Part shown: piece after piece, positions 5 to 3,000 of the stretch
Numbering within the stretch: the stretch's first letter is position 1
Layout of the letters: every line of letters begins with the position of its first letter
NCBI GenBank assembly: GCA_964035545.1
Contig: OZ037767.1
Location: forward strand, 18,754,259 to 18,818,258
Direction of reading: 5' to 3'
Length of the DNA stretch: 64,000 bases
From: Bugula neritina
Taxonomy: Eukaryota > Animalia > Bryozoa
The notes under the pieces: generated by a model
What the model saw: the letters and a program-made list of their open reading frames with translations, nothing else
Databases searched by the model: none
Told to the model about the DNA's origin: nothing
Translations under genes and position numbers: made by a program

Positions 5-3000
5 TTATTCATTGGTCTGGTTAAGTAAAGGAGATACTGCAGTTTCTTCATCACTACCATCATCATCATGGCTTTCATCTACACACATAAGCAACATACT
101 CTGCATTAAAATTAAATATGTTTTTGAATAAGTATTTCGAAATGCCTAGAATTTTATGAAAGTACATAAATTATTTCTATTTTTATCCAAAAATATTGAC
201 TTTAACAAAAAGATAACCAAATAGCAAAATCTAAAAGAAAACACGCAACTAGAAAAACTCCTATCGTGTAATTTCGTAGAATTTTAAATATTATTAACAA
301 ATATTTTTTTATTTTTTATGCACTAAATATAAATTAAAATTTTACTATGTCAATTACTGAGACACACACAAAGTTAACCCATAAAGGTAATCTTTGTATT
401 GAGAAGCCATGCCTGATGGAAAACGTGGGATTTACTATTTTTTCAACTTATTTTAGCCAATAACAAAAATTAAAAAAAATCCACAGTTGTGGTTTCTCGA
501 AAACTTTTTCCAACATTATATGAGAACACATAACATAATATACTTGACTAGGACTGAGCAATGTAACATTGCATAACATAATTTCTCAATATATTTGCTA
601 TGCTAAGAAAAAATCAAAAGCTCTTAACAAAAATTGAAGAAAAGCATTTAAATTTTTTGATTATATCAAAATCCCTCTATGTGCTAACCAATTGCTCAAT
701 CTAAAATGTAATAAATAAATAAATAAAATAAAATAAATAAATATTATGATTAAGTAGAGTAACTGAAAATTAAACCTCTTAATTTTTGACTTTTGTATGA
801 ATATACATTATTAACTTTAGTAAGGCTTTTCCAATCTTATACTGGAAAAGCTGTAAATGTTCAACATTGGCTACATACCACCCTCTGTTGAAGGAGGCAC
901 AGCAGTTGTGTCATTAACTGTGCTAATTGCTGAAAGGGATTCAGGTACTGGAGTCGATGAACTTTCGGCCTGAGTCATTGGACTTTGATTGGCATTGTTA
1001 ACTTCAAGCAAACATGATGGCATTTCACTGGATGTATTTTGATAACATAAAGGAGTTTTCTCATCTTCTGAACTTTCACTAACACAGAGATCAACTTCAT
1101 TACTTGTTCTAGATCTATTACCAGGTAGTATATTTCTAAATCTCCCAGACCCAGAAATCACATCAAGTTGCAGATCACCAGATAAACTGTTTGAAGGTGG
1201 AGGACTTGGTTTTTGTGCCTGGTCTGAATCTTGTGATTGAGTCGGATCTGGTGTCTGGGCTGGATCTGGTGTTTGGGCTGGGTCTGATGTCTGGGCTGAA
1301 TCTGATGTCTGGGCTGGATCTGATGTCTGGGCTGGGTCTGATGTCTGGGCTGGATCTGGTGTCTGGGCTTGATCTGGTGTCTGGGCTAGAACTGATGTCT
1401 GGGCTGGATCTGATGTCTTGGCTGGATCTGGTGTCTGAGCTGGATCTGGTGTCTGGACTGGATCTGGTGTCTGGGCTGGATCTGGTGTCTGGACTGGATC
1501 TGGTGTCTGGGCTGGATCTGATGTCTGGGCTGGATCTGATGTCTTGGCTGGATCTGGTGTCTGAGCTAGATCTGATGTCTGGGCTGGATCTGATGTCTGG
1601 GCTGGATCTGGTGTCTGAGCTGGATCTGATGTCTGGGCTGGATATGATGTCTGGGCTGGATTTGATGTCTGAGCTGGATCTGATGTCTGGGCTGGATCTG
1701 ATGTCTGGGCTGAAACTGATGTCTGGGCTGAAACTGATGTCTGGGCTGAAACTGATGTCTGAGCTGGATCTAGTGTCTGGACCTCTAAAGATATAGTTGA
1801 TATCTTTAATTACATACATTTATGTATGGTGACTCCAGAAGTAAGTGTTGCTTACATGGTAGTCTTTATGTTTCAATTCCAGTTGCCAATTATATATATA
1901 TATATATATATATATATATATATATATATATATATATATATATATATATATATATATATATATATAGTAAAATGAGTGTTTATAAAACGTTACTTGAGTG
2001 CTCTATAGAAATAAATCTAGAGCGTAAACATTAGAAGAAGTAAAATGAGATTTGATTAATATAATGGCATTTATTACTAGTAGTTTCGTACACAAGAACG
2101 ATGTGCACTCGTCAGATAAATTAGCCACTAATTAGTGGCTAATTTATCTGACGAGTGCACATCGTTCTTGTGTACGAAACTACTAGTAATAAATGCCATT
2201 ATATTAATCAAATCTCATTTTACTTCTTCTAATATATATATATGTATATATATATATATATATATATATATATATATATATATATATATATATATATATA
2301 TATATATATATATATATATATATATATACATATATATATATATATGTATATATATATATATATATATATATATGTATATATACATATAGTAATATTTACC
2401 ATTTCTATTGGAGCCTCTTGAAGCTGATCTTCTTTTTAATTTACGTACAATTGCAATTATAATTAATAGCACTATAACAACTCCAAATAAGACAACAAAA
2501 ACTATGAGAATGACATTAGCTTGTGATGCTTTTGAACGAGGCTTGATTTCATCAGTTGTGTTTCCTACAACAGAAGCCTTTTATAATTTAAAATATTTAA
2601 TTGGTATTTGAGCCATTATAGTGATGATATGAAAGCAGCTATATGGCTCGTTGACTGTTAGTCTAATTTCCCGAACAATTAGTTGCTCTAATTTTAACTC
2701 ACGTTGGTTGTTTGTAACAGTTACTGCCTTCTTCTGGGTTGCACCTATGAATGTAGTTGTTGGGTTGTTAAGTTGCTCCGTGCAATATTTGCCATAATAG
2801 CCTAAAATTTTACTAACAATTTCAGGATGTCTAAAAGTGCATGATCTGTTATTGTGTTTCTAAAGAGTTTTTTCAACACTCCACTTAATGCTGGATTTAT
2901 AGCAGCAAGTTGGAGTTGAGTTTCAAAAACAACTCATGTAAATTTGTGTTTGAAACTGGACCAGAAAGTGGTACACTTTCAATAAAACAGGGTAAAAACC

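Follow-up and report, generated by a model that had tools for sequence, protein, structure and literature searches.

The subject of this report is a gene on the minus strand of a 64,000-nucleotide stretch of contig OZ037767.1 (assembly GCA_964035545.1, positions 18,754,259 to 18,818,258 of the forward strand; hereafter, the window). Coming from a bugulid-like bryozoan, it is predicted to encode a type I membrane protein, and window positions 871-1784 probably represent its last coding exon. This exon harbors an array of 18-bp units which is a real coding minisatellite in the tail of a tumor necrosis factor receptor (TNFR)-like protein and in which 17 units fit a pattern known from docking sites for TNF receptor-associated factors (TRAFs). 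The most fitting reading of the gene is as one of a new family, restricted to bryozoans, whose members would be small receptors structurally similar to BCMA, TACI, and Grindelwald. The best explanation as a whole, a TNFR-like receptor with a recently expanded array of TRAF motifs, is advanced tentatively, with a likelihood just short of even, and a neutral coding minisatellite is its nearly equal rival. The expansion has the appearance of a recent event that has not so far been selected, not of a conserved design.

Coding Minisatellite and Gene Structure

The window represents AT-rich eukaryotic DNA (G+C content of 33%) from an assembly of 216 Mb. At positions 1244-1780, Tandem Repeats Finder detected an 18-bp tandem repeat of 29.8 copies with 90% matches and no indels (score 808). 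The minus-strand frame of the array is open from 1809 to the stop codon at 873-871; read in the spliced frame, the array begins with EVQTLD, continues with 30 hexads, and is followed by a unique tail of 116 residues. The commonest hexads are PAQTSD (eight units) and PAQTPD (six units), and the remaining 16 are variant units of 12 kinds, among which PVQTPD, PAKTSD, LAQTPD, SAQTSD, SAQTSV, and PAQTSV were seen twice each, alongside single variants. Higher-order duplication is represented by a 12-residue (two-unit) block present twice within the array. Counted in the spliced frame, there are 17 instances of P-x-Q-x-x-D and 12 of P-x-Q-x-S, four of the latter not being P-x-Q-x-x-D as well, so the counts of the first-pass annotation (17 and four further sites) were exact.

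The first-pass annotation had also noticed that the spliced frame is absent from the track of open reading frames (ORFs). This is true: upstream of 1161, the array frame lacks a start codon, and the ORF list consequently gives only a 96-aa piece of it. The two other frames over the array yield ORFs of 214 and 201 aa; both were rejected, as they lack a continuation into the tail common to the two nearest paralogues (L011 and L012, see below) and misfit the splice phase. A 24-nt repeat probe allowing for up to two mismatches gave 29 matches in the 216-Mb assembly, all 29 of them inside the array. A dispersed satellite or transposon was ruled out, since the repeat is unique to the array locus, and so was a mucin-like extracellular stalk, since the array comes after the membrane span. 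No alternative haplotig carrying the repeat was found in the assembly.

Five minus-strand exons (Table 1) are joined by GT-AG junctions with matching phases (2, 1, 1, 1) into a coding sequence of 1470 nt, i.e., 489 codons and the TAG stop. The acceptor AG of exon 5 is situated at 1786-1785, and the exon start at 1784 in phase 1 fits the donor of exon 4 (2400/GT). Every search reported here was made exon by exon, and the five-exon product is a model built from splice sites and phases. The model displays the type I topology: a signal-peptide exon, an ectodomain with eight Cys, one membrane span, and a cytoplasmic tail, with the first array unit approximately 21 residues beyond the span on its cytoplasmic side. 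The DNA of exon 1 resembles that of exon 1 of L011 and L012; the eighth Cys is kept, in the context C-P-x-Y-x4-5-C, in spliced gene models of another bryozoan, Watersipora; the weak Pfam matches of exon 4 are solely to single-pass transmembrane regions. Neither a death domain nor any other Pfam domain was matched in the tail, in agreement with the first-pass description of a tail devoid of the death domain. The exon, the frame, and the cytoplasmic position given by that description were likewise borne out by the splice phase and by the location after the membrane span.

Table 1. Coordinates (window numbering) of the parts of the receptor gene and of the short elements associated with it.
Feature	Position	Strand	Content
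Exon 1	7403..7497	-	Start codon and signal peptide, 31 codons + 2 bases; donor AA/GTAAGA; ends in phase 2
Exon 2	3044..3240	-	Cys-rich ectodomain: 7 Cys, module C-x3-C-x12-C-x3-C; N-glycosylation sequons NCS, NET
Exon 3	2703..2801	-	End of the Cys-rich domain (GYYGKYC, eighth Cys) and Thr-rich stalk; phase 1 at both ends
Exon 4	2400..2564	-	NTT sequon, 25-residue transmembrane span, then basic stop-transfer stretch (RKLKRR)
Exon 5	871..1784	-	Cytoplasmic tail after the stop-transfer stretch: array and 116-residue unique tail; TAG at 873-871
Coding minisatellite	1228..1784	-	30 complete 18-bp units and a partial one; consensus CCAGCCCAGACATCAGAT = PAQTSD; 17 units PxQxxD
PVPES	937..951	-	In the tails of the three closest paralogues, the longest stretch that is invariant (PVPES, PVPET, PVPES)
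AATAAA	308..313	-	The sole one after the stop codon, at a distance of 560 nt; may be a polyadenylation signal

Ectodomain Family and Fold

The genome contains at least 16 exons paralogous to exon 2, which form one cluster around the window (C3:18.60-18.83 Mb) and further ones at C3:25.09-25.11 Mb and C9:6.62 Mb. Ten paralogue loci were fetched; a hydrophobic span is present downstream of the Cys-rich exon in nine of them, and an exon resembling exon 3 is recognizable by similarity in the two nearest paralogues. A profile made from 12 paralogous exons retrieved 57 relatives among 1.84 billion protein representatives, and every named one is an 'uncharacterized' protein from one of two bryozoans, Watersipora subatra or Bugula neritina (in RefSeq, the Watersipora family members are labeled 'uncharacterized' too). 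The spliced Watersipora models, 205-235 residues long, follow the exon order of the window gene and comprise a signal peptide, the 8-Cys domain, a stalk, a membrane span, and a tail. A near-identical exon 2 was encountered as a genomic ORF (P0002) of a related bugulid in a Joint Genome Institute (JGI) sample and in Logan contigs; the JGI contig harboring it is 11.6 kb long and ends ~960 bp downstream, before the tail exon. The protein word search and the metagenome scans with tail peptides and the 24-nt repeat probe revealed no orthologue or other relative of the tail.

In Pfam, no match was obtained for exons 2, 3, and 5, for nine full-length relatives, or for 52 domain sequences. Overall, the ectodomain family is an unannotated family of small 8-Cys receptors that is restricted to bryozoans in the searches made. 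One member, P0047 (Bugula neritina KAF6023842), displayed a sub-threshold match to DUF4501 (E 1.6e-4, 22 bits vs the cut-off of 29.6) which extends from the Cys-rich domain through the membrane span and might tie the bryozoan proteins to a broader eukaryotic family.

The structure models suggest, with a confidence somewhat better than even, that the ectodomain belongs to the BCMA/TACI/Grindelwald structural class, and the argument for this is the agreement of individually weak scores. The model of the window's own exon 2 (predicted local distance difference test, pLDDT, of 74) found its best match among 48,161 chains in the ectodomain of Grindelwald (Z 3.1, root-mean-square deviation, rmsd, of 3.8 over 41 residues), and its weak Foldseek rows included TACI, Grindelwald, BCMA, and Fn14. 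A complete-domain model of a Watersipora member, inferred from 52 sequences, reached a pLDDT of 93.6 and is composed, at residues 27-59, of two strands, a short helix, and then a longer helix. Only four of the 48,161 chains matched it at Z>=2, three of them being BCMA (Z 2.4, rmsd 2.2, 36/36 residues), again BCMA (Z 2.4), and Grindelwald (Z 2.2); 11 of its 35 weak Foldseek rows, with E>1, were TACI, BCMA, or Fn14. Comparison of ESM features gave 0.89 for the second cysteine-rich domain (CRD2) of TACI and 0.85 and 0.83 for BCMA, and the Atlas fold search returned a molluscan cluster of 222 aa with TACI/BCMA Pfam families (TM 0.52) along with a BCMA cluster (0.45/0.58).

Two results argue against this assignment: the structural Z of 2.2-3.1 is far under the level which the notes of the tool advise for trust, and PF00020, PF09257, and PF09305 did not match the window exons, the nine full-length relatives, or the 52 domain sequences even at E<=10. 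The description of the product as a "Grindelwald-like TNF receptor" in the first-pass annotation is therefore retained in part: its sole neighbors by fold and embedding are Grindelwald, BCMA, and TACI, with the low Z values and the lack of a Pfam TNFR model among 52 members on the other side. A sequence-profile search of the PDB gave only plant alpha-hairpinins, at E 0.03-0.17 via CxxxC...CxxxC, and these matches were read as a case of motif-level similarity, not homology.

The search for a TNF ligand with PF00229 is relevant here as well. The genome gave nothing at E<=0.01, which likewise does not favor a TNFR-like receptor. The best match (E 0.059) is a short exon, L028:1528-1620 (-), at C1:29.39 Mb, reading CGIYYIYVQISY, in the TNF-family signature region (GIYYIYVQISY); a second TNF-like piece, GLLIRAQGLYYFV, occurs on the opposite strand ~300 bp from this exon. 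TNF ligands may be encoded in this genome by several exons, each too short to be recognized in an exon-by-exon search. PROSITE-like patterns, together with ORF inspection of one region, revealed no TNF signature in the window or in 15 other loci, 13 of which are situated at the paralogue clusters.

TRAF-Like Motifs in the Tails and Candidate Partners

In the motifs recognized by TRAF1/2/3/5, Px(Q/E)E is considered to be the major form and Px(Q/E)xxD and Px(Q/E)xT the minor ones, the latter as in LMP1 and TANK (PMC6125299). The contacts of TRAF with the peptide involve a hydrophobic pocket, the Ser453-455 triad, and R393/Y395; the TRAF site of CD40 is PVQET, and the Asp of the minor motif is not always important, PxQxT being an alternative form (PMC6125299). 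The TRAF3 motif of BAFF-R is PVPAT (PMC2989778). The first-pass annotation had cited PxQxxD as a docking consensus, and it was correct in that Px(Q/E)xxD is a minor TRAF1/2/3/5 motif (PMC6125299). The rule of P at -2, Q/E at 0, and D at +3 describes 17 units of the array, which is positioned on the cytoplasmic side, after the span and the stop-transfer residues, in a segment whose composition suggests disorder.

Outside the array, the invariant run PVPE[ST] of the three closest paralogues (Table 1) is, judging by its sequence, a candidate TRAF site of the BAFF-R/CD40-like type. More distant paralogue tails, L015:5034-5555 and L018:1608-2135 (C3:18.64 and 18.66 Mb), contain PTQES and PVQES, the CD40-type major TRAF motif, and have a strongly conserved block, SQCPPAGSCHDRRDRSLTSTPL, in common. 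In Watersipora subatra, four members (P0010, P0012, P0062, and P0063) have in common the tail island YP[TV]Q[AS][IV]GD, whose P-x-Q core is an exact fit to none of the three canonical TRAF motifs.

As for possible partners, the genome contains 29 exon matches to the MATH domain of TRAFs. A tandem cluster at C9:5.07-5.43 Mb (L024-L027) comprises at least five TRAF genes, and the MATH domains of L024, L025, and L027 keep a peptide pocket of the TRAF2/3 type, with R-x-Y...D and the SSS triad (pocket sequences KMCCR/AYLNGDG and PDPDSSSFRRP). Since the C9 genes possess an intact R-x-Y...D and SSS pocket, a suitable TRAF partner exists. The best MATH match, on C1, is TRAF6-like and devoid of the Ser triad. 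An in-frame TAA is present in L024 just upstream of the MATH match, and a second MATH cluster was detected at C8:10.03-10.08 Mb.

Origin of the Array and Competing Explanations

The nearest paralogue, L011, is located 8 kb off and possesses a homologous exon 5 in the same frame and with the same end point; the DNA identity of the two genes is 67-77% along the whole gene. Its tail comprises 13 degenerate hexads, and in 11 of them, as read from the sequence, the Gln is kept at the same position. The array end is common to the window gene and L011 and consists of PAQTPD, [LP][VT]QSQD, and then a 12-residue stretch. As the array ends with PAQTPD in both genes, one PAQTPD is therefore older than their split. 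The array itself is a recent expansion. Constraint is clear in the ectodomain and, in the tail, confined to small islands, because the ratio of non-synonymous to synonymous substitution rates (dN/dS) vs L011 is 0.12 in the ectodomain exon 2 and 1.07 in the unique tail. The synonymous divergence from L011 is 0.22 in the tail and 1.66 in the ectodomain, a disparity that may stem from gene conversion affecting the last exon or from the noise of few sites.

The explanation that we tentatively favor starts from an ancestral, degenerate stretch of Q-periodic hexads directly after the membrane, ending with PAQTPD and still seen in L011. Slippage or unequal exchange would have led to its recent growth to ~30 near-identical 18-bp units, and the product would be a disordered segment of ~190 residues with 17 P-x-Q-x-x-D and four further P-x-Q-x-S sites. 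The receptor would signal via TRAF adaptors; the PVPE[ST] island would be the older docking site, to which the amplified PAQT[S/P]D units would add many weak sites of the TRAF2/3 class. Perhaps one unit in 2-3 would be occupied at once, because the units are spaced by only six residues, and a single tail might in this way retain a TRAF trimer through avidity. Docking of TRAF2/3-class adaptors at the array, partial and avidity-driven, is plausible from the sequence, with a likelihood clearly below even.

A number of results weigh against this explanation. The array contains neither P-x-Q-x-T nor PxQE units, i.e., the major Px(Q/E)E form is missing from it. Only two of the L011 hexads are PxQxxD (PGQLPD and PAQTPD); in the next paralogue, L012, EVQSQK runs straight on and there is no array; and the tails of the Watersipora members, 56-87 residues long, contain no repeats. 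According to the first-pass annotation, unrelated low-complexity repeats in orthologues would speak against docking. The comparison made on paralogues partly goes this way, L011 retaining a short degenerate version and L012 none at all. Among the types of unit variants within the array, four are synonymous and 12 non-synonymous, and the replacements per 30 units amount to seven at Pro(-2), six at Asp(+3), two at Gln(0), and one at Thr(+1). The tail dN/dS close to unity points in the same direction, and neither the paralogue tails, nor the unit variants, nor dN/dS give a sign of conservation of the array or selection on it. Canonical TRAF motifs were observed five times in 14 family tails vs 2.4 expected in shuffles (P ~0.09, not significant); these tails are non-independent, and the tail of the window gene was entered one base out of frame, the conclusion being unchanged. 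Finally, the only public run containing the stretch is genomic, with a depth of 56-60 even over exons and introns and without joints; it is stored in the form of short contigs, which are interrupted within the array.

Most of these observations are what would be expected of a neutral low-complexity expansion, that is, of a minisatellite translated but tolerated in a disordered, fast-evolving tail, where it would serve at most as a flexible spacer and match PxQxxD by coincidence. This possibility is a serious one, nearly equal to TRAF docking. It would account for the tail dN/dS, for the prevalence of non-synonymous unit variants with P and D as the least conserved motif positions, for an array that is degenerate or missing in paralogues and missing in the Watersipora members, and for the non-significant enrichment across the family. 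Only 0.5-1.5% of random hexad repeats match any of the three TRAF motifs, a rarity in favor of the docking reading; however, the array was selected from a very large scan, and this chance figure has to be read in that light. At the same time, a purely neutral origin does not sit easily with a host receptor whose only fold neighbors are TRAF-coupled TNF receptors with a single CRD, with a unit chemically near the PQQATD of LMP1, with the retention of Gln in 28 of the 30 units as well as in the old L011 array, or with the presence and expansion of TRAF2/3-type partners.

The array could also serve another short-motif function, e.g., as a phospho-regulated segment (TP/SP as sites of proline-directed kinases, or S/T beside Asp) or as a ligand of a different adaptor, with TRAF contacts confined to PVPE[ST]. 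T-P is present in 12 of the 30 units and T-[SP]-D recurs in the units, Thr(+1) is the most conserved unit residue (29/30), and what the three paralogues conserve is PVPE[ST], not the repeat; nevertheless, the same neutral-looking variation of the array and tail counts against this function too, and it is deemed improbable. Least probable is a decaying or silent paralogue of the tandem cluster with a last exon open by chance: the genomic run devoid of joints, the tail dN/dS of ~1, and a protein collection offering no product or tail relative (the only close match being the exon 2 genomic ORF P0002) are compatible with a locus that is not a working gene, but its five exons are open, with canonical splice sites and phases that match, none of the eight Cys has been lost, exon 2 has the low dN/dS given above, and the 116 tail codons, ~22% diverged from L011, have acquired no stop or frameshift.

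Returning to TRAF docking, a further step would be the tuning of signaling by the copy number of the array, which is unlikely on the sequence evidence. The same low likelihood applies to a germline "TRAF rheostat", in which one paralogue would have turned a single docking site into a ~20-valent array that, varying in length between colonies, would set the strength of TRAF-trimer capture or ligand independence, turning the receptor into either a hyper-active scaffold (a cellular LMP1) or a decoy sponge. The setting for such a rheostat would be a colonial animal with tandemly expanded BCMA/TACI/Grindelwald-like receptors and an expanded TRAF2/3 cluster. Should the array bind TRAFs, this would be the first receptor known to us in which the valency of adaptor docking is encoded by an unstable tandem repeat, and it would offer a simple way of genetic tuning of innate-immune or allorecognition signaling.

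Other Features of the Window

The intron between exons 4 and 5 contains a near-perfect palindrome of ~200 bp (window 1999-2233) flanked by (TA)n tracts. In the genomic run, its contig word depth is 10,000-110,000 vs ~60 in the flanks, and it is therefore a very high-copy element; no Rfam family, hammerhead included, was matched by it at the gathering score. Between the receptor gene and the remainder of the window, open frames resembling the reverse transcriptase and integrase of retroelements were noted at positions 12470-13918, 31696-33791, and 38660-40438.

Comparison with Known Receptors and Repeats

Grindelwald, a type I receptor, has one ectodomain with eight Cys, built of a beta-hairpin and a helix-loop-helix C2 module, and a tail which lacks a death domain and binds Traf2 (PMC8024323). 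The predicted bryozoan receptor shares with Drosophila Grindelwald (6zsy/6zt0) the small size, the type I topology, the single ectodomain with eight Cys, and the death-domain-less tail. In structure comparison, Grindelwald appeared as the best or third-best match of 48,161 chains, depending on the model, at ~20% identity and Z 2.2-3.1. The C2 module, C-x3-C-x11-C-x3-C in Grindelwald (PMC8024323), is one residue longer in the bryozoan domain (C-x3-C-x12-C-x3-C). The layout of the other Cys differs: three precede and one follows the C2 module here, whereas Grindelwald has the 4-Cys X2 hairpin; an extra N-terminal strand and helix also distinguish the modeled bryozoan domain. The paper on Grindelwald describes no repeat array in its tail (PMC8024323), unlike the tail found here.

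The whole domain of BCMA (36/36 residues, rmsd 2.2) superposes on residues 23-66 of the family model. The bryozoan domain is longer than that of BCMA by ~20 residues at the N-terminus, has two more Cys, and has no Pfam match. BCMA, TACI, and BAFF-R signal via TRAFs through short tails without domains, and the tail described here is domain-less as well. The PVPE[ST] of the bryozoan tails is intermediate between PVQET of CD40 (PMC6125299) and PVPAT of BAFF-R (PMC2989778). In contrast to the BCMA/TACI/BAFF-R systems, a TNF ligand, whether BAFF/APRIL-like or of another type, could not be confirmed in the genome with PF00229 and PROSITE-like patterns. The family bears on the distribution of the BCMA/TACI/Grindelwald receptor type among lophotrochozoans.

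The motif itself is comparable with PQQATD in CTAR1 of Epstein–Barr virus LMP1 and PIQCTD in TANK: the P-A-Q-T-[S/P]-D unit likewise presents P(-2), Q(0), and D(+3) in a cytoplasmic, presumably disordered segment. Known proteins of the LMP1/TANK type possess one to a few sites, whereas here 17 (21 with PxQxS) are arranged head to tail, at a six-residue spacing probably too tight for full occupancy.

If neutral, the array would be an ordinary coding minisatellite, situated in a tail that evolves fast, and a caution that short docking motifs arise easily in repeats. Length polymorphism is the defining property of a variable number tandem repeat (VNTR). With the coding minisatellites of this kind, the array shares a period that is a multiple of three, ~30 head-to-tail copies, 90% identity, higher-order duplicates, and confinement to a single locus.

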